Shown: positions 21,751-52,065, counted from the first letter of the stretch. The stretch is 64,000 nucleotides of DNA from Lepidodermella squamata (GCA_047495785.1 JBLDXI010000048.1:558001-622000), one strand, 5' to 3'. Translations and numbers: made by a program. The notes: generated by a model not told the origin, from the sequence alone.

Positions 21751-24700
21751 CTAAACGCCGTTGTAGCATTTGGAAGGATCGGTGTATGAAGTTTCGCCCG
21801 CAAACTGATCAACAATAAATGTGGTTATTCGCAGAGAGAACCTTGGAAACGCCGTAAATACCTCAGTTGATTTGCAGCCGAAATTCGCCCGTCGGCATTC
21901 AGCAAATTTGGTCTTTTGAGCGTCGTTGTAACAGCGAACGTATTTCTGTCACGATTGAGTAAATCATGAATGAAGATTAAAGATTCCACAAACCATACCC
22001 AGTTGAGATCAGCTCGGTGGTTACAGGCCAGAAGGTTGCGGCCGAAGAAAGCGAAAGCGTTGAACGCTGGAGACTGAAAGAACATTTTGAAAACTCATTC
22101 TCAAAGCTGGACGTCAACTCCTACGAATTTGGTTTCCCCGGGTAGACAAGCTTGATCACCAGCTATGCAGCGGAAAGTCGTGCCCTTCACGCATTTCCTC
22201 ACATTCTGCGAGGCGGAAAACTAGTTTTGGTAGGCGAAACAGAGCATAACTCACGCCCTTGTTGCAGTTGTCCGTGAACCGAGTAGTCCACTCTTTGAAA
22301 ACTGTTTCGCCTTCCCGGCAGTACCGCCTGCACGCCTCGAACTGGCCCGTTACCGAGTTGATGCAACGGAAAGCAACTAGAGCTGTAATATCATCGACAT
22401 TTTAACTATCGAATCCGTGTGTTATCCTAATCAATATGTTAAAATCCTGTCTGATCGGCGAGCCGTTATACGTGCACTAAAACGGCACCAAAAAAGCGCG
22501 GATCGCAAAGAAAAATTAGCACCCAACAACCCCTGAGGCGAAGAACGCATTTATTATCTAGTTGAGGTGAATCGCAGACGGTCGTTTAATCCTTAATCTA
22601 ACCTGCAGTGTCCAGACAGCGCCATTTGGCTGCGATCAGACCGATTAATTAATTGAAATCTAATATCCGTTTAGCCATTGAGAACAGAAGCTATTATGTA
22701 GGCGAGGTAAAGACTGGACTTACTACAACTTTTGATTCGGTCAGAGTTCTCACAGTCGACGAAACCATCATCGCCCCAGCATTGCAACTCAGGGGAATCA
22801 AATCCCTGGCCACGGCAAGAATTGCCAGCTGCAGTTAAATTGCCTTTAGGCAGATCACTGTACCGTAATTGCGGCCCGGTAACGTCAGCCCAGCGCGTGA
22901 AAGTTGCGCCTGTTGAGGTCTTAGTCAAGAGTGATCCTTCGTAGTCGTTCGCGCTCGGCGTGATGCGGCATTCCCGTGTGAATTCAGTTGCTTTTACGCC
23001 AGGGCAGGTCGCAAATATCGTTAATGTGGCGCTCTCTTGTTGACCTTGGTAAGGCATGTGAGAGTATATGAGTGCCTCGTTTTTATCGGTTACAAAAACA
23101 CGGCCGTGCCAGGCAGCGACTCTGCAAAACCTGTAATTTACGACGGTAGAAACAATTGAAATTGAAATTGAAATGTTTAACATTCATACTTGAATCCTGG
23201 ATATCCATCAGCTCCCAGGTTTCTTATAAGGAAATAGTTCATGCAATTCATAGCCCCTGAAACAAGTAAAAGCATGAAACTGAAATTGCGTGTAGCTTAT
23301 GTACAAACATGCATATTCCAGGTTGGGGATAAACGGGAATGTGAACATCAAGCCACTTGTATTCCCCTGAACAAACAATATTATTTATTGGTTCATTCTA
23401 ATGCCTTTTTATTATTTCATACCGTTATGATCTTCCACGAACAGCCAATCGTACCAACCGTACCAACTTTAGGCGTTGAAATATTCGCTACAGAACAGGG
23501 ACTCACGTAGATTTCACCACCACAGCCTTTCGCTGGATCAGTCGGGTACGCGTCGGGTACGGTAACTTCAGCCCAGCGCGTGCAAGTCGCACCTGTTGAA
23601 GTCTTTGTCAAGAGTGATCCTTCGTAGTCGTTCGCGCTCGGCGTGATGCGGCATTCTCGTGTAAATTCAGTAGCTTTCACGCCCGGGCAGGTCGCAAAGA
23701 CCGTAAGTGTGGCGCGCTCACCTTGGTCTAGGTAAGGCATGTGAGAGTATACCAGTGCCTCGTTTTTATCGGTTACAAAAACACGGCCGTGCCAGGCAGC
23801 GATTTTGCAGAACCTGTATTCACAGCAGAAATATAAAAAACGGAAATAGAAATCTTTCCTTTTCTATACTTGAAACCTGGATAACCATCAACTCCCAATG
23901 TTCTTATTAGGAAATAGTTCATGCAATTCACCGCCCCTGAAACAGTTGAAAACAGCATACTAGAGTTGCCTGTAGCTTATGTACATACATGCAAATTGTA
24001 GATTTGGGACATTCGGGAATGCGAACATTAAGCCACTTGTATTCCCCTGTTCAAACGAGATTTTTATTGCTTTATTCTAATGGCTGATTTTATTTTTTCA
24101 TACCGTTGTGACCTTCCATGAACAGCCAACCGTACCAACTGTACCGGCTTTAGGGGTTGAAATATTCGCTACAGTACAAGGTCCGACGTAGATTTCACCA
24201 CCACAGCCTTTCGCTGGATCTGTAGGATACGGGATGTCGCAGACGTCGCCACCCAGGCCATCCGGGCAAACGCATTTCGTGCAGTTGAAACTCGGGTTAG
24301 GATAGCCCCCATTTTGGCAGGCAATCGTCGTTCTGTTGCAAGCATTTGAATCTGGAAGAAAATCGAGATACTATTTTTTAAAGCTGATCATATCAGGATG
24401 GCTCATATTATCGATTGTGTTCAGTTGACTAATAATAAGATAAAACCCGATTCAGCGACCCCAGGAGATTCCGATTTTGATTCTGATTTTATTATGCATT
24501 TTGTTTTGCAGCGATTATTTCTCGGCGCCTGACCTCAGAGGTCGTAAAATCTACTAGCTCATCCAGTTTAGATTTAACGAGGATTTGAAGATGTTTCGAA
24601 GAATGTCGAAAAGCTAGCATCCACGCAGATCCAACATTATTGTGGCATAGCGCATGGTCACGTTGGAAGTGTCTAAGCATTGAGCTTAAGCTACATAGTT

Positions 24701-26746
24701 GAACTTCTGGGCGCGCGCTGCCTCCAACTTATCAATGTCTGTTATGTGATACGGTAAGCAGACCGAAAGGCACCAAAAATCAAGACGCGGAAGAGTGTAG
24801 GTTTTGGACGCTTTTAGCCGTAGAGACTTCGATGTGAACGATTTGCATATTATGCCATTAATTAATGGTAACGTCTGGACAACGCATTGCAGTGCTCAGG
24901 GAACGTAAGGTGCTTATATCAACGATCATTGCGAGATCTTTAACTGAATCGACAACATTTAGCTCGCAGGAGAAGGGGCTAAGATCCCTCACGACCTCCA
25001 GTTTGAGAATTCGCGGGTAGACGAACCTCATTTTGATCCAGGGAAACCGGGAAACCAGGAGATTCAAAATATACCTACACATTACCCATATTCAAATATT
25101 AACAACTTTGATAACCCACTGAAGCATTTGTAGAGCGTGTTCAACTTGAACGAGTCGAGCAGTGACAGGTGAGAAGTTTGCCCAAAACTTGTTACATATC
25201 GTCGATCGGACGGATACCAGTCGGGTAAGAAAAGAGGCTGATGTGCATCTGTTATTGGATTGAAAAGCGAATCGTAGTCGAATTGAGTCGCATTGTAGTA
25301 CGTTTGGGCGTCGTTGATAGCGTACCTAGTTACATAAATCCAATAATGTGCCAGTCGCTTGACATAGAATTCTCAACAAACCTATTTTCGTAACCAGGGT
25401 ATGGGATGAGGTATTGGTCGCGATCGGGCCGCCTTATTTCCATTGTTATTCCAAAGGCGAATGCGATTTTTCTGACCAGGATTTGAACCTAATTTGAACA
25501 GCATTTTCGCGATTTCTTTCACGACAAAATATAGAGAAACTTACTGGAAGGTCATTTTCGCTGAGAACTTGTTGAAAGCCAACAAACTTCAAAGGGTAAT
25601 CAGTAGAGTAACCACCCCAGGACCTGAAAATGTGTCGTGAACAGTGAACAGAGTCGCTAAAATGAAATTATTTACGGCATTGTTAAGAAAATGATCGAGT
25701 TGGGTTGATTCAGGTCGATTGTCGATCGTTCCTCAAATCTCAGGCAAGTAACCGATTCGATTAGCGCAATTGCTTGCTTTGCAATCCCTTTATACTCATC
25801 GGCTGGAAAAACAAATAAGTTAACAACTTCTGATTAATAAATTCACTTTTAGGCAAGATTAACTAAATATGCATAAACAATTTCTACTTTTTCAGATATA
25901 CTTGTTATTTAACCATAACCTTAACCATGAGATTCCCCGAGCTATTGACCATAAACAGCCCGAATCCATATTAATTTATGAGCTTAACATGGAATTCGCG
26001 ATAATGACCCTAATACCGCACTTAATGCAGGCATCAGCTGTTGCGCGCTAATGTAGCGGTGCTAGAATTTCAAATTCCAGGGTTACGAAATTAAAGGTAG
26101 GGCCCAGCTAGAACTACAGTGCAGAAGCATGATTATATCACAATGAATCGCAAAACTGAAAACCCCACAAAAGATGAAATAATCAACCAGAATCGTTCTT
26201 TATAGCGAAAAGTTCACTATAAAAGGTTCGTTATAAACGAGTTTGGCGACATGTAAAAGTGGCTCGTGCCACTCAATTTCGCTCCATATAGTCGCTATCT
26301 GACCAGTTCCGTTATAACAAAAGCGCGCTGTAAAAGAAAGAAGCGTCAAAATGCCTCAAGGCTCAAGTCGGCTGAGAGCGAGCGCGACTAAGTCTCACAC
26401 ATTTTTTGCAGAATTGCCCTACGTTCATGATAAATTTGAAGGTATTAGCTGCGATCTTCAGAACCACGGAAATAAAATGTGCAAACTTACTCATGTCTAG
26501 ATCGCCGACCGTTGATAAATACCACGTTCCATTGTTGAATGTGTAAGGAATGGGCAAGGGCCAGGGCGTAGCGGCCGGTTGGCCCGGCGTGAAGGCATCG
26601 GTCCAGTCAGGGTACATTTTCAAATTTATAGCAGGGATTGCCGGATCAGTGTTTTGAAATGGCGGTAAGTTAAACGGCTCTCCTGAACGGCACGACGAAA
26701 GTCGAAAGAACGAATAAACAGAAAGAAGAACGTAAACACGCAACAT
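21751..26746 (-). CDS. Secreted non-catalytic astacin-like protein A: pseudo-astacin + EGF + CUB + partial kringle + second CUB + kringle-like + Cys-rich tail
   Basis: Signal peptide; WPLPIPYTF; IESVTCLRFEER; VRKIAFAFGITMEIRRPDRDQY in place of HExxHxxGxxHExxRxDRD; FDYDSLF; GQ..LSLLDSFKLNTLYKC; CQNGGYPNPSFNCTKCVCPDGLGGDVC; GCGGEIYV; DYEGSLLTKTSTGATxTRW. Exon phases checked and consistent. Confidence 0.8.
24640..24960 (-). mobile_element. Degenerate CR1/L2-like LINE RT C-terminal fragment in an intron
   Basis: VVDSVKDL, KTYTLPRLDF, LPYHITDIDKLEAARAQKF resemble post-RT LINE motifs; absent from the equivalent intron of gene B. Confidence 0.55.
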
Positions 26747-28868
26747 TGAATATAGTGATTAAACTACAAAACTAGGAAATTAAATTAGAAGCAATTATCA
26801 AGCAGTCATCAGGAAGAAATATTCAATAAATCAGTAATCAGTGCAAGGAAACGGCTGAATCAGTGCGTGTCGAACAATTTCCTCTGAAATCAAGACATTT
26901 TATGAGTTAAGCCTCCTTGAAAAATCGAAGCCCATTCAGACCATTCAATTTTTACTACGAATTGTTACCGTTTGTCTATGGTCGATGGTTGAGTCAAAAA
27001 TCATTATTGATTGAAATGTGTGTCTGTGAGTCGCATCAGAATATCAATTTTATGAAACTAGGATTGCTGATTGAAAAATCACTAAAAAAATATATATGTT
27101 ACGATCGCGAGAGAAAAGAAGCGAGATGTTTTGAAATCAAGAGGCCTCTTAGTCGCGCGTGCCCACAATTTTGTTTTCGAATTTCGAGAAGAGCACGCGA
27201 TTAAAATGGTGGACGTAAACTTTCCTAATGAATGAACGTCTCTAAACAGAGCGGTTTACATTTGATAATAATTCTGGAGGAAGCACTGAACTTCTCAAGC
27301 TATTTGTGCTAAAATGAGAGGTCCTTCGCCCAGGACTGGAATAAGTATCAAACCATCCGGTACCGAAGCTCGGAAATTTCAGCTAATTTTGAATAAAAAT
27401 TTGGTCCGCCGTCCGCTTCGTCCTCCCGATCCGCGAAGCTGTCGAGCAACTACGTCTCTCTGCGAACCCGGTGCCCCGGTCTCCGCTAGCCCTGATCGCC
27501 AGCAGGCTTCCTCGGGGTCCTCTGCCCACCTTCGGTGTGTGATCGTTCCGTGTCTCTTCCGTCTTTCTACATCTTGTACGTCTTGTCTTGTATAATCCTG
27601 GTTCCTCTTCTCCTTTCTTTTCTTTTTCTTCCTGATGCACTCCTTCTGTTCTGATTGACCCATTACATGTAATCTTCTGCATACGATAAATATTCCTTTA
27701 GCTCGCCCACTAGCGTCCTCAGCGCACTGCCGCCGGCAAGCGCATGTCGTCTCACAACCGCGTGCCATCTCTGTCACTTTGTATATGTATATTGTTCGCA
27801 AGAAAGAAATTTATTATGTTATATTGTTCTTTTATATTTTTGTGACTGATGGACAAATAAATTTGAATTTAGAATTTAGAATTTTGGTCGAAAAACACAA
27901 CTTTTCGTAGTATTTTTCGGAAACTTCCCGAATTTCCCCCATTTTCTTCCTAATTTTGCCGCAAAGTGACGCCGAAGTGCGTCCCAAGATAAAATCTAAC
28001 AATACAGCAGCCTGCAGGAATAGGTCTTATAGGCTGAATTTTTTTATTCGAGGATGGTTTGGTAAATGAGGACAGTAGGCGAAAAATGAGCCAGTTTTGC
28101 TGCAGGAACGACAAGTTCTGATATTCAGATTTTTCTTAAGATTTTTCGGCGTCACAGTGCGAAATTGCCGCCACCATGGATAACGTGGTAGGACACTTTT
28201 TCAAGTCCTGCCTTCGCCATAACATCGTTCTCGCCGGAAAGAATGCAATATGTGACGCCGTTTCCAATTGAATACGCAAACGCTTGTCGTTACGTAATTC
28301 AGGTGCTTCTAGATGCCTTTATGGCCTTACAGACCGTTTATTTATTTATCTTATTTCAGAGTTACTTGCATTATCGCGTAAGCGATCTGAGCAATATACA
28401 GTACAATATTCAGCAATAATGAAAAGCAATATATTGGTTTCTTGGTACTTGAACACAAGCTTTCAAAAATGCTGACTGAATGGTTGCTGTTGATGTAACA
28501 ATGGTGTCCTTTCGAATGAAAAGGCATGAAGTGATGTATCTCTGTCAAATTTGACGCCAAAATGACTCGATCACAATAATAATAGATGAAAGTGAGAAGT
28601 GAGCAACACGGTATTGGGGGTATTTTGGCTATTCGAAAAGACTGAATCGGGTCCATTCATTCGAGTGAAGTACGAGACTTCATCAATTTCAAATGCAGAT
28701 TACAATTATCCGCAACCGGAGCCCATTTTCAGTGCGAACAGTCGAAATATGCAAGCCCGCATTTTATTTTGTATCAGCCCTGACAAACTCTCACTACGCA
28801 TGCAAATTCATTCAACTGCATCTCGCCACTACTCTCTTCACTCGGCGCTTGATCGTAATTCATTGTTT

Positions 28869-29311
28869 TCACAGCTTTTTCACGTAGGTGGTGCCGGTGA
28901 AGCGGGGAGGATTGGAAATACGCTTCAAGCAGTTGGACTTGTTTGAAAAGACGCACGACTTGGTGTTCGGATTGAAACGGAACGCGTAACAGTCCTTAGT
29001 GCTCGAACACGCCTGGCCACATAGCGCCTCATTCGCTTGGCTCTCCTGAGCGTAAGAGCCCTCACAGTCGTCAAAGGACATCGTTCCGAATCTGGAAAGG
29101 ACATCTTTCCTCAACTTGAGGTAGTCCGCTGAAAAGTTGGCCACGTCAATGATCAAGAATATTCGATGGAAGCAAAATACTCACAAGAACTCATCGTCGT
29201 AGTCGGTGGGGCTTTAGCGACTCGTGCATCTTTGATCAGAGATACGGCCAACGCCTCAGGTTGAATGGCGAAGCCAATAAGTAGAACGGAAACAGCGATC
29301 TTTGCGAACAT
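28869..29311 (-). CDS. Small secreted PAN/apple-like domain protein (copy 3), 2 exons
   Basis: ATG 29311, intron 29129-29184; exon 2 protein identical to copy 2. Confidence 0.75.
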
Positions 29312-30393: not shown

Positions 30394-30528
30394 GATTCAA
30401 CCGCTCCTGGTTCAACAGAAGCAAATAGGCGGCAAGGAAGCGAGAAATCGGCTAGGAGAATCATTCTCAATTTGCCAAGTTTCTTATTACTTTCCAGTGA
30501 TAAACTTTCACCAATTCTTCATTTGAAC

Positions 30529-31323: not shown

Positions 31324-31783
31324 ATGGCCGTTACGCAAGCTATGTATGTCATTTTCGCTCTGGCCGCCTTGGCCACCTTCGCAGGTAATTTTCGTGAGCC
31401 CCAATTTTGAGAAAATAAATTGTAACGTTTGACTTGTAGATGCCCTAACATGCTACGATGGTAGCGATGGAACAACAAACACGTGCAATGGTACGCAATA
31501 CACCGCTTGCTCGGTAAGTCACAACTACTTTGTTGAAACCATTGTCATTGTCCGATTTCTAAAGAAATCTGTTACGAAAACAACATTGTTCGGCGCCACA
31601 ACCACCTCGATTTCAAAGGGCTGTTCAACGAGCTGTACACCGGCTAGCGGCTGTGCTTTGACGATCGCATGCTCGGAGGTTTATTGCTGCACGACTGATA
31701 AATGCAACTCTGGTGAAATGGCGACGCCACTGGCTGCTCTTATCTTGGGTGCTACAGCACTCATCTACTTCGCCAAGATGTAA
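31324..31783 (+). CDS. Ly6/uPAR three-finger protein, predicted GPI-anchored (copy 2)
   Basis: Same 3-exon structure; differs from copy 1 by L->M in the signal peptide and S->G in the GPI tail. Confidence 0.88.
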
Positions 31784-32943: not shown

Positions 32944-35900
32944 CTAAACGCCGTTGTAGCATTTGGAAGGATCGGTGTATGAAGTTTCGCCCGCAAACTG
33001 ATCAACAATAAATGTGGTTATTCGCAGAGAGAACCTTGGAAACGCCGTAAATACCTCAGTTGATTTGCAGCCGAAATTCGCCCGTCGGCATTCAGCAAAT
33101 TTGGTCTTTTGAGCGTCGTTGTAACAGCGAACGTATTTCTGTCACGATTGAGTAAATCATGAATGAAGATTAAAGATTCCACAAACCATACCCAGTTGAG
33201 ATCAGCTCGGTGGTTACAGGCCAGAAGGTTGCGGCCGAAGAAAGCGAAAGCGTTGAACGCTGGAGACTGAAAGAACATTTTGAAAGCTCATTCTCAAAGC
33301 TGGACGTCAACTCCTACGAATTTGGTTTCCCCGGGTAGACAAGCTTGATCACCAGCTATGCAGCGGAAAGTCGAGCCCTTCACGCATTTCCTCACATTCT
33401 GCGAGGCGGAAAACTAGTTTTGGTAGGCGAAACAGAGCATAACTCACGCCCTTGTTGCAGTTGTCCGTGAACCGAGTAGTCCACTCTTTGAAAACTGTTT
33501 CGCCTTCCCGGCAGTACCGCCTGCACGCCTCGAACTGGCCCGTTACCGAGTTGATGCAACGGTAAGCAACTTGAGCTGAAATATCATAGCAATTTTAACT
33601 AGTGGATCTGTGTGTTATCCTAATCAATATGTTAAAATCCTGTCTGATCGGCGAGCCGTTATACGTGCACTAAAACGGCACCAAAAAAGCGCGGATCGCA
33701 AAGAAAAATTAGCACCCAACAACCCCTGAGGCGAAGAACGCATTTATTATCTAGTTGAGGTGAATCGCAGACGGTCGTTTAATCCTTAATCTAACCTGCA
33801 GTGTCCAGACAGCGCCATTTGGCTGCGATCAGACCGATTAATTAATTGAAATCTAATATCCGTTTAGCCATTGAGAACAGAAGCTATTATGTAGGCGAGG
33901 TAAAGACTGGACTTACTACAACTTTTGATTCGGTCAGAGTTCTCACAGTCGACGAAACCATCATCGCCCCAGCATTGCAACTCAGGGGAATCAAATCCCT
34001 GGCCACGGCAAGAATTGCCAGCTGCAGTTAAATTGCCTTTAGGCAGATCACTGTACCGTAATTGCGGCCCGGTAACGTCAGCCCAGCGCGTGCAAGTTGC
34101 GCCTGTTGAGGTCTTAGTCAAGAGTGATCCTTCGTAGTCGTTCGCGCTCGGCGTGATGCGGCATTCCCGTGTGAATTCAGTTGCTTTTACGCCAGGGCAG
34201 GTCGCAAATATCGTTAATGTGGCGCTCTCTTGTTGACCTTGGTAAGGCATGTGAGAGTATATGAGTGCCTCGTTTTTATCGGTTACAAAAACACGGCCGT
34301 GCCAGGCAGCGACTCTGCAAAACCTGTAATTTACGACGGTAGAAACAATTGAAATTGAAATTGAAATGTTTAACATTCATACTTGAATCCTGGATATCCA
34401 TCAGCTCCCAGGTTTCTTATAAGGAAATAGTTCATGCAATTCATAGCCCCTGAAACAAGTAAAAGCATGAAACTGAAATTGCGTGTAGCTTATGTACAAA
34501 CATGCATATTCCAGGTTGGGGATAAACGGGAATGTGAACATCAAGCCACTTGTATTCCCCTGAACAAACAATATTATTTATTGGTTCATTCTAATGCCTT
34601 TTTATTATTTCATACCGTTATGATCTTCCACGAACAGCCAATCGTACCAACCGTACCAACTTTAGGCGTTGAAATATTCGCTACAGAACAGGGACTCACG
34701 TAGATTTCACCACCACAGCCTTTCGCTGGATCAGTCGGGTACGGGATGTCGCAGACGTTGCCACCCAGGCCAACTGGGCAAACGCATTTCGTACAGTTGA
34801 AACTTGGATTCGGATAGCCTCCATTTTGGCAGGCAATCGTCGTTGTGTTGCAAGCATTCGAATCTGGAAGGAAGTCGACATGCCATTTCGGATTAAAAGC
34901 TGATCATAATATTTTTTAGATGACTAAAGTACGGACGATAATTTCTTTTGCCTAGCATTCTCATTCCGTAACGAAGAGAAATTATTTGGAGCTAGGAGCG
35001 GGCTTCACCAGTCGATAGATCTAGTCTGTGGTAAACTTTCCTAAAATCCTCGTTTGATTGGGATAAAAGTTTTCAAAAATGAATATTTCCCCAAAAATCA
35101 CAAGAAGCCTTTTTGTCACCAATTCCCCAAATTTTATCCCAATTTAACGAGGATTTTAGGAAAGTTTACCACAGACTAGATCGACTGGTGGAACCCGCTC
35201 CAAATAATTCCTCACAATTCAAAAAAATGCTAGGCAAGAAGTTATCATCCGTACATAAGTAATAAGACCCCAAAAAAGCCGACCCCAAAAAGGGGGCAAG
35301 GGCCAAGATCCCTCCGCGAGGGTCATGTCCTTCGATCTTCGATTTGACCGCCGCATGTTGAAACCGGGCGATTCAAAATACATTTCATCATATATAATCA
35401 AATAATAAATAAAGATGGTAACCCACTGAAGCATTTGTAGAGTGTATTCAACTTGAATGAGTCGAGCAGTGACAGGTGAGAAGCTTGCCCAATACTTGTT
35501 ACATATCGTCGATCGAACGGATTCCAGTCGAGTAAGAAAAGAGGCTGATGTGCATTTGTTATTGGGTTGAAAAGCGAATCGTAGTCGAATTGAGTCGCGT
35601 TATAGTAGGTTTGGGCTTCGTTGATAGGGTAACTGGTGCCACAAATCCATTAACATTCCATCCCGAGGCATTAAGTATTCAACGAACCTATTATCGTAAC
35701 CAGGGAAAGGGATGAGGTATTGGTCGCGATCGGGCCGCCTTATTTCCATTGTTATTCCAAAGGCGAACGCGATTTTTCTAACCAAGAGTAGAGCCTAATT
35801 TGAACCAGATTTTCGAGATTCTTTCGGTGACTTGAAGTCTAACTTACCGCGGCTGGAGATTCACGGGCGCTGATTCTTCTTTGAAAGCCAATAAACTTCA

Positions 35901-36706
35901 ATGGGTAATCAATAGAGTAACCACCCGCGCCCCTGAAAATTAATCGTGAACAGTGAACAGAGTCGCAAAAATGAAAATATTTACAGCATTGTAAAGAAAA
36001 TGATCGAGTTGGGTTGATTCAGGTCGATCGTCGATCGTTCTTCAAATCTCAGGCAAGTAACCGATTCGATTAGTGCTATTGCCTGTTTCGCAATCCCTTT
36101 ATAAGTTTCGGCTGTCAAAAATAAAGTTCAGTTGTCAAAATCGGGTTAAATTCCCTTTTATTCACGAAAATGATCCCAATGCTGCAAATCTCCCACTCAA
36201 TTGCGGGCGGAAACTGTTGCGCGCTAATGGTGCGGATCCCGGCGCCTGAATTACCAGGTTTAAGTGATTAAAGATAGGGCCCAACTAGAACTATAAAAGG
36301 AGTCTTCAACTTACACCTCAAGGCGGCTGAGGACGAATGCTTCTCGCAGCTTAGAGCAAATTTCAAGCATAATTGCCTTACGTTCATGATAAGTCCGAAG
36401 GTAGCTGAGATCTTCCTACCCGCAGAAAAACGCTCGAAACCGCGCGAACTTACTCAAGTCTAGATCACCGACCGTTGATAAATACCACGTTCCATTGTTG
36501 AATGTGTAGGGAATGGGCAAGGGCCAGGGGGTAGCAGCCGGTTTACCCGGGGTGAAGGCGTCGACCCAGTCCGGGTATATTGTCACATTTATGGCGGAAA
36601 TTGCCGGATCAATGTTTTTAAATGAATCAGTAAACGTTTCTCCCGAATAGCACGACGAAAGTCGAAGGAACGAAAAAACTGAAAGAAGAACGGAGAGACG
36701 CAGCAT
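32944..36706 (-). CDS. Secreted non-catalytic astacin-like protein B: pseudo-astacin + EGF + CUB + kringle-like + Cys-rich tail
   Basis: Signal peptide MLRLSVLLSVFSFLRLSSC; VRKIAFAFGITMEIRRPDRDQY; CQNGGYPNPSFNCTKCVCPVGLGGNVC; same exon layout as genes A and C; stop TAG at 32944. Confidence 0.8.
34929..35255. mobile_element. Foldback-type MITE (long inverted repeat) in an intron of gene B
   Basis: tctagtctgtggtaaactttcctaaaatcctcgtt (~35020-35055) is inverted at ~35145-35181; outer arms gtacgga..ttgcctagcatt / aatgctaggcaa..tccgtac. Confidence 0.8.
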
Positions 36707-39093: not shown

Positions 39094-39536
39094 TCACGGT
39101 TTTTTTTCACGTATAGGTGACGCCGGTGAAGGGGGAGAATTGGAAATACGCTTCAGGCAGTTTGACTGTTTTGAGAAGACGCAAGACTTGGCGTTTTCAT
39201 TGAAACGGAACGCGTAGCAGTCCTTGGTGCTCAAACACGACTGGCTGCACTGTACCTCATTCGGTTGGCTGGCCTGAGCGTAAGAGCCGGCACAGTCGTC
39301 AAAGGACATCTTTCCTAATCTGGCAAGGACCTCTTCCTCAGCTCGGCGCAGTCCACTGAAAATTTGGCCAAGTAAATGATTAGGAATATTCGCGAAATAA
39401 TCACAAGAACTCATTCTCGTCGTAGTCGGCCCAAGTGCGACTTATGCGACTCTTGCATATTTGATCAGAAGTGCACCTAACGCCTCTGAAAGACGAAGCC
39501 AATAAGAAGAACAGAAACAGCAATCTTGGCGGACAT
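39094..39536 (-). pseudogene. PAN/apple-like pseudogene (copy 4)
   Basis: Alignable to 13580-14021 but with a 4-nt deletion in exon 1 and 1-nt deletions in exon 2. Confidence 0.7.
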
Positions 39537-41151: not shown

Positions 41152-41611
41152 ATGGCCGTTACGCAAGCTCTGTATGTCATTTTCGCTCTGGCCGCCTTGG
41201 CCACCTTCGCAGGTAATTTTCGTGAGCCCCAATTTTGAGAAAATAAATTGTAACGTTTGACTTGTAGATGCCCTAACATGCTACGATGGTAGCGATGGAA
41301 CAACAAACACGTGCAATGGTACGCAATACACCGCTTGCTCGGTAAGTCACAACTACTTTGTTGAACCCATTGTCATTGTCCGATTTCTAAAGAAATCAGT
41401 TACGAAAACAACATTGTTCGGCGCCACAACCACCTCGATTTCAAAGGGCTGTTCAACGAGCTGTACACCGGCTAGCGGCTGTGCTTTGACGATCGCATGC
41501 TCGGAGGTTTATTGCTGCACGACTGATAAATGCAACTCTGGTGAAATGGCGACGCCACTGGCTGCTCTTATCTTGAGTGCTACAGCGCTCATCTACTTCG
41601 CCAAGATGTAA
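41152..41611 (+). CDS. Ly6/uPAR three-finger protein, predicted GPI-anchored (copy 3)
   Basis: Protein identical to copy 1; same 3 exons. Confidence 0.88.
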
Positions 41612-42776: not shown

Positions 42777-44214
42777 ATGGAAATCGTCGTGATAGTTTTC
42801 GCCATCATCAGCTCTCTGATTTTAGCCGGCTATAGCGAGGCCAGTAGTTTTTTATCTGGAATTTACGGCTCGGATGATGACACGCAGACGACACGCTTCA
42901 CTGCGCCGATTTCATGGTCGAAATTCGGCGATAAAAATCTGTTGAAAAGTCTTCTTTTCCTTCGAAAAAACGAATTGGTGGTGTCAAAAGTCGACACGAA
43001 TCAATCATCAGCTGTTCGCGTCATGGTTGATTTAGCACGACACGGTCGACTGGCGCCGCATGACAAGATCGAAGCCATTCCTGGTACAGTGGAAACCTGC
43101 AATAAATTCGCATTCAATCTAGAAAAATCATCGACGAAACATTTGAAATCGGTGAAATTATTCATTTTTGCCCCGAATTTCGACGCGGAATCGATTACTG
43201 GTAATATCGAGGTTGAGTGCCAAAATGGAACCTCGACATGGCGTCGGTACAAAATTACAAAAATTCACAGCGAAAATTGGTTGGAAATTTCGATGCCAAT
43301 CAGCTGTTTAAATGGGAAAATAACCTCACCATGTACCGGTAATTTTTTCTAATTTTTTCAAATCTTCGAAATTGAAATTTGAAATTATAGGACATCCTGT
43401 TGATGGTAATCCAAGCCATCGGCCAGTTTTATTGCTTCATCACGAAAGTGTTTCGTCTAAATCGGATGAAACTGACGTTGATGAGGGGTATTTTGACGAT
43501 TCTTTGCCTGTTTTGCCCTTTGCTGATTCGCCGAAAGCCATTGGAATTCGATTTGCGAGGCATTTATTCAAGCGTGACGCACCTGTGCCATCAAATCGAC
43601 GCCCGAGGCCGAACATCTGCCACCGCGAGACGCTTTACATCAATTTTCGAGAGGTCGACCTTGGCTTGGTAAAATAAAATATTTTCTGAAATACATTTTC
43701 AAAATTCAAGATAAAATAATAGTAGTAGGAATAGCGAAATTGCAGGAAATATTTCAGATCAAATCATATTTTGGGACTGATTGGGTTTGGGAGAAATATT
43801 TTGAAAAAATTAGGCGAAATTTGAAATGTCCAAATCTATGATTTTGAATTTTATAAAAATTCAAATTTAAATTTTATTAACTCCAATTTTATTAAATTTC
43901 CATATTGTCTTACAAGTTTTCTTGTTTTTTTTCAGGGCATTTTATTTCCGCCATCGTATGCCGCTAACTACTGTTCCGGCCAATGTGGCTTTCCGATGCC
44001 GCGGCACCTAGCCGCAACCCGCCACGCTCAATGGCAGTCGATGTTGAACCGATTCGGTGATTCATCATCTGCCAGCGACTACTCACCTCCGCCACCCGCG
44101 CCTTGTGCACCTATTCGCTACAGCAATAAACCGGTCATAATCTCACGGCTAGATGGATCTGTCGCCCAAGAAGTGTTCCCTGACATGGTTGTAGAAGAAT
44201 GCGCCTGTTTGTAA
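42777..44214 (+). CDS. Divergent TGF-beta/BMP family ligand, 3 exons
   Basis: Exons 42777-43338, 43391-43668, 43936-44214; signal peptide, prodomain, KR and RRPR sites, mature CHRETLYINF...YAANYCSGQCGFP...HA...APCAP...PDMVVEECACL. Confidence 0.9.
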
Positions 44215-45274
44215 CCGGAAAAAAAATCATTGTGATTAAAATTGTGATTTTTCAAGCTAATAATAAACCGAATAAACTGCCGATAATGGAGATTTTCCAC
44301 CGGTGAAAAAAATATCTGTTTACCTTATAGCCACTTTCAGGCATACTTACTATAATGTATATTATAGAGTGCGTAGCGTAAAAATAATAATGAACGATGC
44401 CCTGATTTTCCGACTATCATAGGTAATTGAACGATTTTTTCCGCTATATTAATACAGTCGATACGTTTTTGCGGTCAAATTGATCACAACCTTTCATCGC
44501 ATATTTTATCAAGTGCTTATTATTTCAGGTATATTACTCTTTTTGTACAATTCAATTTCGCAACTCAATAACGGAAATTGTCGACATGAAAAAAATTGTT
44601 AAATTAATTTTATTTTAAAACCCGATTTATATGTATAGAGAGGAGTGCTAGTTTCTCCTTTATGTTCGCACGAATATTCTACAGCAAGTCTTTTGATCGG
44701 AAACATTGCACCACAGCAGGAAGAAAAAACGTGCGAGGCGAATACAATTTTATACCTGCCTATAGTCATAATATTTGATGCGCGATACGCTCTTTTGGCA
44801 TCGCCTATTATATAAGAATCAAGGTAGGTCAATGACGCGCTTTTGACGAAATATCTTTTTGAGAAATTCTCAACTCAATAGCGAAGCCTGGCTTGATGTC
44901 CAAATTTTACAATAAAAATCTGAATATAATAGCATTTTAGACTTAAAAGGGAAAAACTGATGAACTGTTAGGAAAAATGTCATTAATTCACTAAATTTTA
45001 ATAGCTGTTCTACTAATGAGCCGTATGTGGTTTGTTGATAAATGAGAGTTGATATACTCATTTTTCAATCGTTGTTTTTTGGCTCTAGTCCAAAGATAGT
45101 AATATTTCTAAAAAATCTCTGTCTAAAGCTTTTTTAGATTGAAAAATTCAAATTCTCAGAAATGTTTACCACAGGAATAATGGAGGTATTATCGTAATTT
45201 TTACAATCTACCTATTCCGATTTTTCTCAAAATAATTATAGAAATGCCAATTATTTTAAAATTATTAATCAAAA

Positions 45275-46175
45275 ATGATTAGCGGTATTGAGTACCATAC
45301 AGAGGATCTGCTAGAAGCGGCTCAAAATGGCGAGGACATCGAGGTGAAACTAAAAATTGTCTGCGGGGCAGATATCAACGGGCGAACGCCGAGTCAGCGA
45401 ACGCCGCTCATTCTAGCGGCTGAAAACGGCCGTCTAATATCGACGCAACTGCTGATCGAACACGGCGCTGATATATCTGCTCAGGATGTCGACGGTTGGA
45501 CGGCGCTGGTGCGGGCGGCTAATAATGGACACACGGACGTTGTGAGGGCGCTAATTGAAGGTCAATTTGACACACTTCTATTTTTTTCGATTCACAAATT
45601 AAAAATTTCAAAATTTCAAAAATTTAAGAATTTCAAGCTTTAAATTTTAAGTTTTTGGGATTTTTTCCCTGATTTTGAAAACTCTGGTTTAAACTTGTAA
45701 TTCAGAAATTTAAAATTAGAATTTTTCAAATTTTTAAAAATTAATTTCGAAATTGCTGGTTTATGAAAAACTTGGTGAAAGTGAATTGAAAATATTTTTG
45801 AATAGGATTTTTTTAATTTTTGTAGGAGGCGCCGATCCTAATTACAAGTGCCCGTCAAACTGGACGGCTTTAGCGTTGGCTACAGCAAGCGGGCGAGTCG
45901 AAACAGCTCGAACCCTCATCAGCTACGGCGCCGATGTGAATGCCCAGACTTCAGATAACGGTTCTACCGCGCTGATGATCGCATCATGGCAGGGCAGTGC
46001 CGAACTGGTGAAGGCTCTTCTCGAAGCAGGCGCCGATGCCACGATGAAGAACGACTCAGGCTCGACGGCGATCGACCTGGCGAAAAGTGACGAAATCAAG
46101 TCGACAATTGCCTCGCACGCGGCTAAAAAATCGACCAAGAAGCAGCATCACAGCAGTCGAGACATTAATGGCTAG
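45275..46175 (+). CDS. Ankyrin-repeat protein (~5 repeats), 2 visible exons
   Basis: Exons 45275-45560, 45826-46175; TPLILAAENG..LLIEHGAD, GWTALVRAANNGH, GSTALMIASWQG..LLEAGAD. True start uncertain. Confidence 0.85.
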
Positions 46176-46529
46176 ATGCGATTTTACTGACCAATAATTT
46201 ACTGCTTATCGATTATTTTGTTACTCACGACTCTGCAACTTTCGTTCGATTGCCAACGAGATTTTTAGCTCCTAATATGACTGTATTTTTTCAGTAATTT
46301 CCTGATGTTCTCCAATAATATGTGTACCGACAGGATATTTTGCTTTATTTCCATATTAAAGCTGGATATTAAAACTTGTGGCTCGTTTCATCGAAAAAAT
46401 TCAAAAAATCCGAGATGAAACTGATTGGTAATATTTTCGGTAATTACACATTAGTGCCCAAAATGTGTTTGAGGAAATCTTTACATTTTCTTTCCCGATT
46501 GCCACGCGATTTTTCGATAGAGAAGAAAT

Positions 46530-46634
46530 GGAGGACCAAGAATTCGAAAACCCCATATTTTTATTATTTACGGTAACGGAGAAGTTGGTCAAGTTGGTCA
46601 CGTGACTTTACCCGGTTCGAATTCTTGGTCCTCC
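46530..46634. repeat. 105-bp inverted-repeat element; related copy at ~11780-11890
   Basis: 19-bp TIR GGAGGACCAAGAATTCGAA / TTCGAATTCTTGGTCCTCC; shared core aagaattcgaaaaccccatattttta and gtcaagttggtcacgtgac. Confidence 0.75.
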
Positions 46635-47278
46635 TGAGCGGTTATCTCCAGAACGGTGATAGCTAGGAAGCCGCTCTCAAAGAAACATTTCATCAGCGTG
46701 GTGAGATCAACCTAGAAATGCATTCGTTGCAATCCGTTTAGTCACAATTTGTACACGATCGATTTTGATGACACTTTGGCGACAATCCCGCAATATCTTT
46801 GCTCATCACCAAGCCGACGAGACACGTCCATTTTCACCGAATTTATACGATTTCCCAGTGCGGAGATATGCCTTTTTAGGCACCCTGGGGCTGTGTAGTC
46901 ACCTTACAGGATTTTTTCAAATTTAGGCTGCTCGAAAACGCTACCATTGGGTCCAATAGGAAATATGAAAACATCCGGAAACAGTTACAAATTATAAACG
47001 TGTGATTTCCTATCTGCCTAGTTCCTATCTGTTTTTACAAGAGAGAATCCTCCAAAGTTGCCATGTGAAATCGTTTCATTCATGGCGAGCAATAAACCTG
47101 AAACACTGGCCACTAAATTTACGGTTTAGCGGTTTCAATCGCGTGCTGTGCTCGAAATTTGAAAGCTATTGGGCACGTTCCATTCATGCTATAAAATTTC
47201 AAAACAGCCACTATTTCAATCATTTGATAATAGTATTTCGGTAGCTACTTTTTTCATCAACATTTATTTCGACCAGTG

Positions 47279-50200
47279 ATGACGATGCGCAGCATTTTGC
47301 TTGCGTTGGCATGCTCGCTTCTCCACTACCGCTTCTCCTCAGGCCAGGAGGTACATGACGATTATACCTTTGTAAATGTTGCTGACCCAACAATCGGCCC
47401 GATAAATATGACCCTGTACTACAACTTTTATGATGGCTTCACGCCTGGTAAACCGCCGGCCCAACCTTGGCCACTGCCGATACTGTACGCATTCGACAAC
47501 GGAACCTGGCAATTTATCGCTGCCGGCACCAGTTTAGCTGTCCGTGAGTTTACTTGACCGAAAAATTGTCTGTTTTAATTATATATTGACGCGACAGCTG
47601 AGTTTGATAGGGGCTTTATCAAGCAAGCAATAGCTGAAATCGAATCGGTCACCTGCTTGCGGTTCGAGGAGAGACCGTCCATCAACCTGAATACCAAATC
47701 GATTCGCTTCTTGGAAATATCGTGAGTTGCTGTGTTCAAGCGTGATGAGTCGTCATTATATTCATGTTCTACCTATTTAGGAGCCCGTTTGGCTATCATG
47801 GCGATAAGTATCCTCAAAAGTTCATTGGAGTCAATTATTATGAAGGCGGCCTAGAGACTTCGCTCGCGGTTGGTTTCACATCATTTCGAACTTGAAAATC
47901 AAATATATTGTGCTTGAAACAGGTTCCATTGGTGATGAGAAAAATTGGCTATGCCCTAGGTCTGACGTATGAACTCAGGCGACCGGAACGCGACCAATAT
48001 CTTATTCCCTACCCTGGTTTCGAGAACAGGTCTGCTTGCATTCTGGCTCTGTTGCGAGTCGCGAGCTAACTTCTTTGAATTTCTTTTGTCAATAGATTCA
48101 CGATAAATACGGCACAAACGTACTACAACGCGACTCCCTTTGATTATGAGTCATTGTTCAATCCTATTTCGATATATGGGGCAGGCAGACTAGGGGTGAA
48201 TGAAAGGTATCCGCACGACCGGCGATATGTAACAAGCGTGGGACAGACTGCTTACCTTTCACTGTTCGACATGGTCAAGTTGAACACGCTCTACAACTGC
48301 TACAGTATGTTCCATCTATAACTTTCCCTAAAAATAGCCTGTGAAGCGTTTTATTCGTGAGTGAACTAAGGAGAGACGCCATCTCGTATTGCATATTGAA
48401 TGATTAACTTCAATTAGGGTAATTCATTAGTCAACAAGTAGCTCTTTGGTAAGGCTATTACCAGGTAAAATTTGGATCTCATCGGGTTGTTCATTTTGCT
48501 GCGTCAACAATTGCACATATACTTTTTTACTTCGATCACAACCCTGATCAAGATTTTAAAAAATTAATGTTTTTCAAATTATAGGGCAATTCATATTCCC
48601 CGAATTGGGAATTTCAAAAAGACTCAAGTAATAGAAAAACGATTTTCAAATCAAAAGGTCCGACTGTGACCCCTTACCACACGAGTTAGTTCACGAACTC
48701 CGCCTACAAGCTTCGGACTATTTTGAACTTTCAGATCCGGGTGAAGCCAAAAGTCGCATTCGTACAATTAGATAATGAAATATCGGCTCAACGAGTTCAA
48801 AAACGAGATCCCCAGCTTCTGAACATCGAAAATGGCCGTGGCTGGGAAAAATCGAGCTCGAGGCTCCCGCAAACCATGTTTTTGCTCGAAAACAGGCAAT
48901 GTGCTATTTCCAGCTTTACACGTAGCGCAAAAAATACGAATCCTACCTATGATTTATGTTGGAACGGACAGTGCCATACTTAAAGAGCGGGGTCCTCATA
49001 ACGCGTCGTTGTAGCATCTTTTACCGTAAATTCCCAAGTACAAGCCCAGGCAGCACTGAAAGATAGAAGATCAAAGAGCCGACAAAGAGTTGCCGCCTGG
49101 GCTTGTATTTGGGAATTTACAGCTCGGGAAATTTCGAAGTTGCGATATTTAAAACACGTTGTTTCGATATTTCTCAATATGTCGTTTCGTGACATAGCAC
49201 TTTAACTTTGCATCCCGCATCAACTGCGGGACGGTGCGGGATCAAGTGAACTTAAGGCAACCCGCATCGTCCCGCAGTTCATCCCGCAGTGCATCCCGCA
49301 CATCCCGCAGCTCATCCCGCACCTCATCCCGCACATCCCGCGGTTCATCCCGCAGCTCAGGGTGCGGGATCCCGCAGCTCATCCCACTCGTCCCGCATCT
49401 CGTCCCGCAATGTCATCCCGCACTTAGAGCGTATGAAATAAATAAAATTGGACGCTGGCGGGAATCGAACCAGTGACTGCAATCACCAAACGCGCACACT
49501 ACTCCATTGCGCCACCGGTCGATTCACTATAACATATACAGAACAGCTGTAATTACGTGAAATTAAGTCAGCCAAATTGGCGTGCGGCCAAGGCCAAAAT
49601 CGCGATTTCCGAAGCCGATATCGACACGATCGGCGGCGAATTCGGGCAGCGGCCGCTGATAGTTTGTACAGAATTTCGAGGGCTATCCGCCGATATAAGA
49701 TTTATTGACCGGTGATACTTGGTTCGCGCTGAAATTGCGTGCAAAGTCAGTCAAATTGGCGTGCGGCCAAGGCCAAAATCGCGATTTCCGAAGCCGATAT
49801 CAACACGATCGGCGGCGAATTCGGGCAGCGGCCGCTGATAGTTTGTACAGAATTTCGAGGGCTATCCGCCGATATAAGATTTATTGACCGGTGATACTTG
49901 GTTCGCGCTGAAATTGCGTGCAAAGGCAGTCAAATACCAACTGCGCAGCATGGCATGATTATTATATTTTATTATCGAAGGTTCCAGTGCGTTGATTCAT
50001 ATGTTCAAGCCTGACGGTTTGACGCCTCGATAATCGGTCGTAAACAGTTCATCCCGCACTTCATCCCGCAGGTCATCCCGCAGGTCATCCCGCACTTGGG
50101 CGGGATGCTTCCGGACACTTGCGGGATGCACTGCGGGACGTCCCGCCGTATGTGCGGGATACAACCCGCAGCATGTGCGGGATACATCCCGCAGGTCATC

Positions 50201-52065
50201 CCGCACGTCCCGCACTAGTGCGGGATGCAAAGTTATATTTCATTTCATTGAAAGTTGAGAAAGTTGATATCAAATTCGAGGCAAAATTCACAAAATTCAA
50301 CTGCTTGCGTATTGTTGCGTTAATTAGCTAGAGATACCACCTTTCATTAGTCCGCTCATGTATATCCAGGTTCAGATCCGTGCAAGAACCCGACAATTAC
50401 ATGCCAAAACGGTGGCTACCCGAATCCGAGCGTGAATTGTACGAAGTGCTTCTGCCCGGTTGGCCTTGGTGGCGATTTCTGTGAAGCCCCGTATCCGACA
50501 GATACAGCGAATGGCTGCGGCGGCGAAATCTACGTTAAACCTTGTACTACCGTTGACATATCAACTCCTGCAGTTGGCACAACAAATTCAACTCGTTGTT
50601 CTTGGCGTGTCAAAACGGTTGGAAAATCATTCAATCCTGCGATTTCCTGCATGTGGTTATCCATTTCCTATTTCAGGATAATACGAGTGGATTGATATTC
50701 GCTTTTCCGACTTGGCCCCTTCTACAATATTTCCGTGGGCAAATCGATTTATTTGTCAATATTTAATATAATAACTTTAATTTCAGAAAGTGTCAATTGT
50801 ATGAACTTTGTTCTTATAAGAGACTTGGGACCGGAAAGCAGAACTCCAGGATTTGCGTAAGTTGAACAAAATAAGTCTTGTTATTGCCTCACCGGTTTGT
50901 ACAATTATTAGGTTCTGCAATATCGCCACCGCACGTGGTCGTGTTTTTGTGACAAACAAAAATCAAGCTTTAGTCTACTCGAGCATACCCTACCAGAAAT
51001 CGGGTGAGGGTGCCACAGTGACGGCCTTCGCAACTTGTCCAGGCGTGAAAGCGACCGAGCTAAGCAAGGAATGCCGAATCACGCCGGTCGCCAGTGATTA
51101 TGAAGGATACCTGTTATCTAAGACCTCAACAGGTGGCACCTGCTCGCGCTGGTCCGAAGATACTGGTTTGCGCATGAGTTATCTTCCAAGGGGCGATTTC
51201 AATGCTTCTTCAAATGCGTGCCGCAATTTCTATTTTTCTACTCTTCAATGCTGGAGTAACGGTGGACTTACGGACTGCGAGAATGCGGGCAGAATTAAAA
51301 GCTGCAGTAAGTCATCAAAATTGTAACGATTTCAACGCGATTTAACGTCAACAAATCCTACTACCGAATTTGGGAGGCTGTATCTTGAATTTTATTGTCG
51401 ATTGTCTGTTGATAGCTCAATTGGCTTTCCGTTGCATCAACTCGGTTACTGGCCAGTTCGAAGCGTGCAGGCCTTACTGCTTGGAAGGCGAAACTCCTTT
51501 CAAGGAATGGCCAGCTCGTTTCACGGACACCTGCAACAAAGGCGTTAGTTGAAATTTTCGAACTTCGTCAAATTTTTGCTTCTTCTTCCACAGAACGCTA
51601 AGAAATGCGTAAAAGGCTCGACATTCCGCTGCATTGCCGGCGAACAAGGATGTCTTTCCGGTGAGGACAAAATCGTGAGTTCCCGAAATATGAAATATCT
51701 AAACTTGTTTGCGACCTTGGGGCATCTCCTACTTTAGATGTTCAACTCGTATGCCTTCTTCGGCCGCAATCTACTGGCGTGTAATCATCGAGCTGATCTC
51801 AATTGGGTACGTCTTGCTACTGCCAATAATATTATCGCTTTTGAACCATTGTGAACAGAAATACGTCCGCTGTTACCGAAACGAAACAGGCAAGCCGTTC
51901 GCCGATTGTCGACGTGCGGATTTCGGATGCAAACCGACTGAAGTGGGTCACTTTTCCTCATCAAATTTCGAGAAGTATACTTCTAACATGTTCGTCTGTT
52001 CTTATCAGGTTTCGGATGCAACGCCGCCGTACATGGATCCTTTTCAATGCTACGATGGCGTGTAG
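47279..52065 (+). CDS. Secreted non-catalytic astacin-like protein C: pseudo-astacin + EGF + CUB + kringle-like + Cys-rich tail, ~14 exons
   Basis: Exons 47279-47543, 47598-47721, 47781-47868, 47923-48029, 48096-48304, 50370-50617, then on to TAG 52065, phase-consistent; MRKIGYALGLTYELRRPERDQY; PFDYESLFNP; GQTAYLSLFDMVKLNTLYNC. Confidence 0.82.
49024..49122. mobile_element. Short hairpin MITE (Tc1/pogo-like ends)
   Basis: gtaaattcccaagtacaagcccaggc ... gcctgggcttgtatttgggaatttac. Confidence 0.65.
49203..50235. mobile_element. ~1 kb TIR element with CATCCCGCA minisatellite arms, tRNA-like insert and 179-bp tandem duplication
   Basis: 17-bp TIR taactttgcatcccgca / tgcgggatgcaaagtta (TA termini); catcccgca arrays 49210-49425 and 50050-50230; 49565-49743 repeated at 49744-49922. 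Confidence 0.82.
49450..49520 (-). other. tRNA-derived Pol III promoter-like sequence (SINE head or tRNA pseudogene)
   Basis: A box TGGCGCAATGG and B box GGTTCGATTCC, followed by T-rich run; acceptor and anticodon stems do not pair well. Confidence 0.55.

Follow-up and report, generated by a model that had tools for sequence, protein, structure and literature searches.

DPY-31/NAS-35, HCH-1/NAS-34 and the 'dpy-31-like' proteins of nematodes, annelids and molluscs have an astacin-EGF-CUB core in common with the genes described here, but are active with a full zinc motif, and end in a TSP1 module or in no further module rather than in a kringle. The 2023 review of the family tabulates this order for nematodes as CD-EGF-CUB(-TSP), CD being the catalytic domain (Table S1; PMC9848320). 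In a 64,000-nucleotide stretch of DNA from Lepidodermella squamata (GCA_047495785.1 JBLDXI010000048.1:558001-622000; hereafter the window, with positions counted from its first letter) there are three multi-exon genes, designated A, B and C, that encode an astacin-like domain from which every catalytic element has been lost, followed by EGF, CUB and divergent kringle modules and a Cys-rich tail. Read from the sequence, these are probably tandemly duplicated, lineage-restricted secreted pseudo-astacins that descend from an active astacin-EGF-CUB-kringle protease and are kept for non-catalytic binding.

Kringles have been documented in astacins before. Proteins with the order CD-CLEC-KRING are tabulated from Dimorphilus gyrociliatus (A0A7I8VBN4) and Mytilus coruscus (A0A6J8CIB2), both listed with a catalytic domain, which weakens the novelty of a kringle after astacin-EGF-CUB implied by a first-pass annotation of the window; the order CD-EGF-CUB-KRING is absent from the tabulation (PMC9848320). 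These proteins, and the astacin-EGF-SRCR-kringle protein P0158, resemble the window genes in having an astacin domain and then a C-terminal kringle and in being of protostome or environmental origin, but have a C-type lectin or SRCR domain between the two rather than EGF-CUB, and P0158 has the full HExxHxxGxxH. Catalytically dead proteins of the same metzincin clan are well known among the ADAMs, namely ADAM2, 7, 11, 18, 22, 23, 29 and 32 and UNC-71 of C. elegans, in which the zinc ligands and general base are substituted but the protein is retained and acts through protein-protein binding by dead or ancillary domains (PMC11266112). Unlike the window genes, however, these belong to M12B, are membrane-anchored and typically keep the Met-turn (PMC11266112). 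In the 2024 review of metallopeptidase pseudoenzymes, astacins receive no more than a brief mention and no astacin pseudopeptidase is treated (PMC11266112), and our full-text literature search returned no paper on dead astacins.

Gene models and the former catalytic site

Splice models were derived from frame-keeping GT...AG pairs common to the copies and from a four-way DNA alignment of the CUB region. A tblastn search with the exon pieces of B found exactly three copies in the window, plus a last-exon relic of 17 codons listed further below. The three genes are:

32944..36706, minus strand: gene B, the reference copy; 11 exons, 626 residues, GT-AG at all 10 introns, no internal stop
21751..26746, minus strand: gene A; 14 exons, 797 residues, all 13 introns GT-AG, no internal stop
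47279..52065, plus strand: gene C, the divergent paralogue; 11 exons, 632 residues, every intron GT-AG, no internal stop

The open, multi-exon frames reported by the first-pass annotation are thus reproduced; that A and B lie on the minus strand had not been noted there. Intron positions and phases are identical in B and C, the proteins of which are 57% identical, and most introns of all three genes are 52-66 nucleotides long; these identities and phases, as elsewhere in this text, are those of predicted models from one genome. Introns of this length, the dense genes and the protostome or environmental affinities of the nearest relatives speak against a human contig. Database searches (Pfam, homologues, PDB) were conducted exon by exon, and the spliced sequences were joined only locally, for the frame test, the substitution counts and the alignment with relatives. 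The domain order predicted for B is a signal peptide, a short pro-region, the astacin-like domain, EGF, CUB, a divergent kringle and a Cys-rich tail. By inspection, the N-terminus is hydrophobic and signal-like in all three, and there are 8-9 N-x-S/T sequons per copy, four of which occupy matching positions in every copy. The pro-region of ~40 residues aligned with nothing, and no Asp-switch latency motif was recognised in it. An AATAAA follows the stop codon by 75 nucleotides in A and B and by 204 in C. An exact look-up of seven open reading frames (ORFs) of the window in a collection of 15 billion proteins found none present. Intron 5 of C (48305-50369, 2065 nucleotides), especially at 49200-50240, contains low-complexity and repeated sequence, among it a near-identical pair of ~150 nucleotides (about 49553-49705 and 49733-49891) and, on either strand, ORFs of proline/histidine-rich repeats.

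The domain and the elements of its former active site are located as follows:

35430..36526, minus strand: astacin-like (pseudo-catalytic) domain of B, exons 1-5, residues 61-258; colinear Pfam Astacin matches on the A and C pieces, alignment with active relatives
35747-35779, minus strand: former zinc-binding motif of B, RKIAFAFGITM; six-frame scan, alignment, PDB profile match
25441-25473, minus strand: former zinc-binding motif of A, RKIAFAFGITM; six-frame scan and alignment
47938-47970, plus strand: former zinc-binding motif of C, RKIGYALGLTY; six-frame scan and alignment
35563-35577, minus strand: former Met-turn of B, SLFNP; six-frame scan, alignment, PDB profile match
25256-25270, minus strand: former Met-turn of A, SLFNP; six-frame scan and alignment
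48151-48165, plus strand: former Met-turn of C, SLFNP; six-frame scan, alignment, PDB profile match

That the domain is homologous to the astacins (M12A / PF01400) is shown by colinear Pfam pieces, by alignment and by PDB matches. In C, Pfam Astacin pieces cover profile positions 16-43, 78-105 and 124-188, the last with 23.2 bits against a gathering score of 22.5. PDB profile searches with exons 4 and 5 returned only astacin-family structures, 3lqb (zebrafish hatching enzyme) and 3vtg (medaka HCE), with weak expectation values (E) of 0.08-1.4, and the profile alignments to both place the same catalytic columns as an alignment of the A, B and C proteins with an active homologue from contig L002, described below, and six DPY-31-like, NAS-like or blastula-protease-like proteins. 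Identity to the active relatives across the domain is 24-26%.

In that alignment, the positions of H, E, H and H in HExxHxxGxxH are occupied in A, B and C by R, K, F/Y and M/Y. The M12A / PF01400 signature HExxHxxGxxHE reads RKIAFAFGITME in A and B and RKIGYALGLTYE in C, with only the Gly and the final Glu left. In all three copies SLFNP stands opposite the SVMHY or SLMHY of the relatives where SxMHY is expected, and the Met, His and Tyr of the Met-turn are therefore lost. Both Cys of the second disulfide pair, at the GC...GC positions of the relatives, are also absent. The copies do keep the Gly of the motif, the Glu behind the third His position, RP[DE]RD, and the Cys of TC.RF together with the Cys at the end of the domain. 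The dead zinc motifs and SLFNP noted in the first-pass annotation were thus confirmed by six-frame scan and by alignment with active relatives. Of the scaffold motifs that it listed, TCLRF is present in all three copies, and RxDRD (as RPDRD) and WP..IPY in A and B; C reads RPERD and WPLPILY. Given the loss of the three His, the Glu, the Met of the Met-turn and the Tyr switch, the pseudo-astacins, as judged from sequence, cannot bind a catalytic zinc or hydrolyse peptide bonds in the manner of an astacin. As homologues of an enzyme family that lack its catalytic residues, A, B and C are pseudoenzymes.

Accessory modules and active relatives

Downstream of the astacin-like domain, the following modules were located in B, with equivalents in the other two copies:

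34616..34863, minus strand: EGF-like module and first CUB strands, exon 6 of B, identified by BLASTP to a DPY-31-like protein; equivalent exons at 24104-24351 in A (minus) and 50370-50617 in C (plus)
34197..34716, minus strand: putative CUB of B, split over exons 6, 7, 8 and 9
33917..34196, minus strand: divergent kringle of B, identified by profile, PDB and the Cys/Tyr/Gly/Trp columns; equivalents at 51039-51306 in C (plus) and 22724-23003 in A (minus)
32947..33575, minus strand: Cys-rich C-terminal region of B, exons 10-11, ~107 residues; equivalents at 21754-22382 in A (minus) and 51416-52062 in C (plus)

The EGF module directly follows the catalytic domain, as in proteins of the DPY-31/NAS-33-38 type, and aligns well with those of L002 and the DPY-31-like proteins. 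It is the module most conserved between B and C (0.90), and the exon that holds it and the start of the CUB, exon 6, is 42-44% identical to L002. The CUB start of the window genes aligns to the Pfam-defined CUB start of P0042, a DPY-31-like protein, the homologous exon of contig L001 passes the Pfam gathering score for CUB (22.1 versus 21.4 bits), and the CUB's C-terminal half has matches, spanning profile positions 1-132, in the CUB-kringle ORFs P0002, P0012 and P0013. No TSP1 repeat was found by Pfam in the exon pieces, and a kringle and Cys-rich region are present in its place. The order astacin-EGF-CUB-kringle proposed by the first-pass annotation is that predicted for B and C; A has an in-frame internal duplication, considered below, and the tail of ~107 residues had gone unmentioned.

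With Pfam, the kringle piece of C scores 14.3 bits (E 0.054) against a cut-off of 34.3. A profile built from the CUB-end and kringle pieces of the window, when compared with 1.84 billion representative proteins, found 36, the best with E 2.8e-24, and the 10 of the 36 that were checked all carry a Pfam kringle, which is where the profile matched them. Aligned with Pfam-verified kringles, the six-Cys framework does not vary, nor do the Tyr-x-Gly, Gly, Trp, Pro and Cys-Arg columns, except that the complete kringle of A has a Phe at the second Cys. Almost all PDB sequence matches of the piece are kringles. The AlphaFold model of the 93-residue kringle piece is of moderate confidence, with a predicted local distance difference test score (pLDDT) of 67 and a predicted template modelling score of 0.55, and all of its top 50 Foldseek matches are kringles, though with E 0.1-0.5 and template modelling scores of 0.4-0.53. 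A model of the whole exon-9 piece, the CUB end plus kringle, had a pLDDT of 57 and was discarded. The module is a real, divergent kringle.

The Cys-rich tail, with eight Cys in its ~107 residues, has no Pfam match and no reproducible PDB match, and its first half is the stretch most conserved between B and C (0.90 identity in windows of 20 residues). Several weak matches in the genes were rejected. A match of the last exon of B to a collagen IV NC1 chain (E 0.043) presumably arose by chance, since the same exon of C has no such match, and a Pfam match to Tox-SGS on the CUB end of A (E 0.002-0.05, under the cut-off) was not seen in C and was dismissed, as were, on the same grounds, Pfam matches to the viral families Pneumo_NS1 in A and NS1_C in C (E 0.07-0.2).

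Over the full length of the CUB-end and kringle piece, the search of the 1.84 billion representative proteins matched only three short ORFs, which come from ENA and Logan assemblies. On each of the metagenome contigs that carry them, designated L001, L002 and L003, an Astacin ORF lies directly upstream, and the contigs have tandem astacin-EGF-CUB-kringle genes, five copies in all, every one of which has a complete HExxHxxGxxH and/or SxMHY as far as it lies on the contig. These genes have the same domain order as those in the window, a similar CUB-kringle linker, a tandem arrangement and a common phase-0 intron at the same position of the CUB, with 25-33% identity over the CUB-end and kringle piece. 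They differ in that the active-site motifs are intact, in that the window's Cys-rich tail is lacking, with a second canonical kringle in its stead in L002, and in that the astacin domain is only 26% identical to that of B. The first-pass annotation had implied that a kringle after astacin-EGF-CUB is new; the same architecture with an intact active site on L001-L003 argues otherwise.

On contig L001 (1-7720) at least three active astacin-EGF-CUB-kringle genes stand in tandem, each broken up by many short introns. The gene at 1445-3728 on L002 has a Thr/Ser-rich linker and, beyond its first kringle, a second, canonical one; after it comes a separate gene with two kringles, at 4155-5429; an inositol-phosphate-kinase ORF on L002 has relatives only among ENA proteins. 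Among named proteins, those nearest to the active L002 protein are 'dpy-31-like' or NAS proteins from annelids, molluscs and nematodes, and 118 of the 120 best public relatives of its astacin domain have the full zinc motif. The other two, P0075 and P0113, were considered as possible members of a dead family and rejected, since the gene model of P0075 has an insertion that interrupts the motif and P0113 has a single His to Arg change. Scans of JGI metagenomes with the CUB-kringle profile and an exon-5 profile yielded no relative, and neither the profile search of the protein collection nor the metagenome scans found a closer relative or orthologue of the pseudo-astacins.

Selection, gene A and alternative explanations

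Synonymous differences between B and C have accumulated far in excess of non-synonymous differences. Over the whole length, the proportion of synonymous sites that differ (pS) is 0.68, which corresponds to a saturated synonymous divergence (dS) of about 1.7, and that of non-synonymous sites (pN) is 0.27, a ratio of about 0.19; in the astacin-like domain, which is 56% identical, pS is 0.70, pN 0.27 and the ratio 0.16. The older 5'-part of A (465 codons) is 84% identical to B, with dS 0.31, a non-synonymous divergence (dN) of 0.089 and a ratio of 0.29 (bootstrap 0.21-0.39). By region, the A-B ratio is 0.41 in the astacin-like domain, 0.32 in the CUB, 0.07 in EGF and 0.03 in the kringle. Fisher tests of synonymous against non-synonymous change gave p 1.7e-51 for B-C, 5e-14 for A-B and 0.0014 for the A-B astacin-like domain, and the stretches around the former Met-turn and zinc motif are among the best conserved 20-residue windows between B and C (0.85 and 0.75). 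The dN/dS comparison among the copies, put forward in the first-pass annotation, therefore returned values, about 0.19 and 0.29, that are not near 1. With these ratios, measured between paralogues, and with frames and splice sites all intact, the three genes have, on this evidence, been under purifying selection since an old duplication. Because the catalytic loss is common to C, whose synonymous divergence from B is saturated, it is old and would predate the duplication that separated A/B from C, as the first-pass annotation had argued.

A short sequence upstream of the genes appears to have been conserved with them:

36752-36759, minus strand: TTGATAAT, a GATA-type motif, 46-53 nucleotides upstream of the ATG of B
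26794-26801, minus strand: TTGATAAT upstream of the ATG of A
47224-47231, plus strand: TTGATAAT upstream of the ATG of C

TTGATAAT is located 46-55 nucleotides upstream of the ATG in all three genes, and the window has only 12 occurrences of it, both strands counted. It lies inside a string common to B and C, CATTTGATAAT, and as there is no other detectable non-coding similarity between B and C, it looks like a conserved GATA-type promoter element. Together with pN far below pS, the A-B ratio and the intact frames and splice sites, this motif about 50 nucleotides upstream agrees with the first-pass annotation that the genes are maintained.

Gene A differs from the other two, with consequences for the claim that three paralogues have been retained. 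The 3'-part of A (21500-23550) is 98.8% identical to B in DNA, as compared with 81-85% for its 5'-part, and A has an internal duplication:

22877..24231, minus strand: internal duplication in A, in which 22877-23550 is a B-like copy of 23560-24231

At the junction, the gene's own exon is joined, after the first third of the kringle, in frame to a B-like copy that begins at the CUB start, and the predicted product has the order astacin-like, EGF, CUB, partial kringle, CUB, kringle, tail, the partial kringle holding two of the six Cys. The B-like exons of A differ from B at 3 of 983 sites and the intervening non-coding DNA at 22 of 1069 (p 0.0002), which argues that these exons are still constrained or have been homogenised. 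All three coding differences are non-synonymous, and one of them changes the kringle Cys to Phe. Gene A is thus a chimera produced by a recent rearrangement, and its product may be impaired.

It is, accordingly, a possibility to be taken seriously, although we regard it as doubtful, that only B and C are functional and that A arose as a by-product when tandem units crossed over unequally or underwent gene conversion, its chimeric product being misfolded or not made. The near identity of the 3' 2 kb of A to B (98.8%, against 81-85% in the 5'-part), the truncated kringle that precedes the second CUB, and the three of three non-synonymous changes in the new coding part, one removing a kringle Cys, all fit such an origin. 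On the other side, the junction is in frame, all 13 introns are GT-AG, divergence is far lower in the duplicated exons than in the introns that separate them (3/983 versus 22/1069), and the older 5'-part has a dN/dS of 0.29 against B. A wider decay, in which all three genes are pseudogenes or young copies drifting and their open frames are a matter of time, is very unlikely. Catalytic residues are indeed gone in all copies, A is rearranged with loss of a kringle Cys, and no orthologue was found in the profile search or metagenome scans; but every intron has canonical GT-AG sites, the frames of 626-797 codons run without a stop, at both levels of divergence pN is much lower than pS, the youngest duplicate exons are seven-fold less diverged than the flanking non-coding DNA, and the promoter-proximal motif is conserved.

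The conservation of the surroundings of the former zinc motif and Met-turn, which are among the best conserved stretches between B and C, and the retention of RP[DE]RD and of the Glu behind the third His position could also be taken to mean that the proteins are still hydrolases, with a site re-invented in the old cleft from other residues or another metal arrangement. This is scarcely probable, as all four ligand and catalytic positions are replaced, by R, K, F/Y and M/Y, the Met-turn has likewise had its Met, His and Tyr replaced, the active relatives compared here nearly always have an unaltered zinc motif (full in 118/120), and no other HExxH-like exon lies in or near the genes. In the six-frame scan of the window, HE..H occurs only at 48680 (plus) and 11894 (minus), in neither case with a G..H continuation or an astacin context, and the same result argues against an artefact of the gene models, whereby transcripts would use another active-site exon and the proteins would be ordinary astacins. 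The models are predicted only, and the 2065-nucleotide intron of C could hide exons, but the dead exon 4 is flanked by introns of 52-66 nucleotides at positions and phases conserved in all three genes, and the Met-turn, which is in a different exon, is dead too. Such an artefact is extremely improbable.

We therefore favour A, B and C as secreted pseudo-astacins retained for binding, against which several observations nevertheless count. Pfam Astacin scores of the single exons are weak, and CUB and Kringle are below their Pfam thresholds in the exon pieces of the window, the support for both coming by way of relatives. The B-C ratio is approximate because dS is saturated, and conservation rests on the paralogues of one genome, the profile search and the metagenome scans having found no orthologue in another species. 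In the A-B comparison, constraint is weaker on the astacin-like and CUB parts (0.41 and 0.32) than on EGF and kringle (0.07 and 0.03), so that the old catalytic domain may be the part that matters least. A carries an inserted truncated kringle and, in its complete kringle, the change from Cys to Phe. The specific binding role, finally, would be one deduced from domain content alone.

Surroundings of the genes and possible role

A and B lie within tandem repeat units of about 11.5 kb (13295-42367). The units also carry a PAN-domain exon (Pfam PAN_1, E 5e-6) and an exon encoding a Ly6/uPAR three-finger-like domain with a hydrophobic tail, for which Pfam Toxin_TOLIP scores 19-21 bits, just under the cut-off. 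The first Ly6-like exon and the third encode the same protein sequence (100% identity), with only about 85% identity in the surrounding DNA. Between the repeat units and gene C there is a TGF-beta family ligand gene, with a signal-peptide-like ORF in its first exon and a C-terminal cystine-knot exon. Elsewhere in the window, a nuclear-receptor C4 zinc-finger exon is followed downstream by an ORF of 240 residues that is ligand-binding-domain-like by eye and has no relative within the searched length range among 5.8 billion proteins. The only Rfam match in the window is a tRNA gene located between two coiled-coil ORFs with weak HIP1 and filament-type matches, and it is probably inside an intron of a coiled-coil gene. 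These features, and the relic noted above, are:

6030-6503 and 10051-10770, plus strand: nuclear-receptor region, with the C4 zinc-finger exon (zf-C4, E 1.6e-8) and the 240-residue ORF
12269-12934, minus strand: ATG-to-stop ORF of 222 residues, no Pfam match, with a Cys/Tyr/Gly-rich stretch that may resemble the GIY-YIG endonucleases of retroelements
13586-13870, 17424-17732, 28872-29180 and 39145-39345, minus strand: copies of the PAN-domain exon
18994..19044, minus strand: last-exon relic of a further copy of the astacin-like genes, 17 codons, 88% identical to the end of B; the DNA at 18970-19075 matches 21730-21837
19772-20119, 31433-31780 and 41261-41608, plus strand: Ly6/uPAR-like exons
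42777-44211, plus strand: TGF-beta family ligand gene (TGF_beta, E 1.3e-13)
45269-46172, plus strand: ankyrin-repeat gene in two exons (E 1e-16 to Pfam Ank families)
55675-56463 and 57266-57889, minus strand: coiled-coil ORFs
56528-56611, minus strand: tRNA gene (Rfam, 54.6 bits)
62262-63521, minus strand: PARP-like gene, with a WGR domain (E 2e-10) and a weak match to the catalytic part of PARP

If A, B and C are retained pseudo-astacins, their ancestor would have been an active protease with the order astacin-EGF-CUB-kringle, from the protostome DPY-31/NAS-like group. The three His, the catalytic Glu, the Met of the Met-turn, the Tyr switch and one disulfide would have been lost before A/B and C separated by duplication, while parts that presumably stabilise the fold were kept, namely the disulfide from TC.RF to Y.C, the Glu behind the third His position and RP[DE]RD. 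The EGF, CUB and kringle binding modules and the Cys-rich tail would have been kept under purifying selection, giving secreted glycoproteins that act by binding, perhaps with a remodelled cleft.

The first-pass annotation listed binding, decoy, adhesive and toxin roles, and we found nothing that supports an adhesive or toxin role in particular. Most likely, by analogy with the dead ADAMs and the CUB-domain enhancers of BMP1-type astacins, the proteins would hold or mask matrix or cuticle substrates, or partners of active relatives, and so serve as a decoy, enhancer or scaffold. Procollagen C-proteinase enhancers are CUB-CUB-NTR proteins that bind the substrate of BMP1-type astacins. Like the predicted products of the window genes they are secreted and non-catalytic and place CUB modules beside astacin proteases, but they have no astacin-derived domain or kringle, and homology beyond the CUB is not implied by this functional analogy.

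The MEROPS family M12A lists non-peptidase homologues. A conserved dead astacin is described neither in the 2023 review of the astacins nor in the 2024 review of metallopeptidase pseudoenzymes, although pseudoenzymes are common and dead ADAMs well studied. That A, B and C would be the first conserved pseudopeptidases to be recognised in the astacin family itself, in which a remodelled cleft together with EGF, CUB, kringle and the new Cys-rich domain captures substrates or partners of active DPY-31-type proteases and so regulates matrix or cuticle processing in a poorly sampled invertebrate lineage, is a rather unlikely extension. The value of the example is limited, since the profile search and metagenome scans brought up no orthologues and the function would be one deduced from the domains. 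It is, however, a clean natural case in which no catalytic element has escaped replacement, not even the structurally important Met-turn, and the domain and its binding modules are still under purifying selection, and active relatives of the same architecture are available for comparison. The genes could thus show what role an astacin scaffold can have without cutting, and how CUB and kringle modules are reused.

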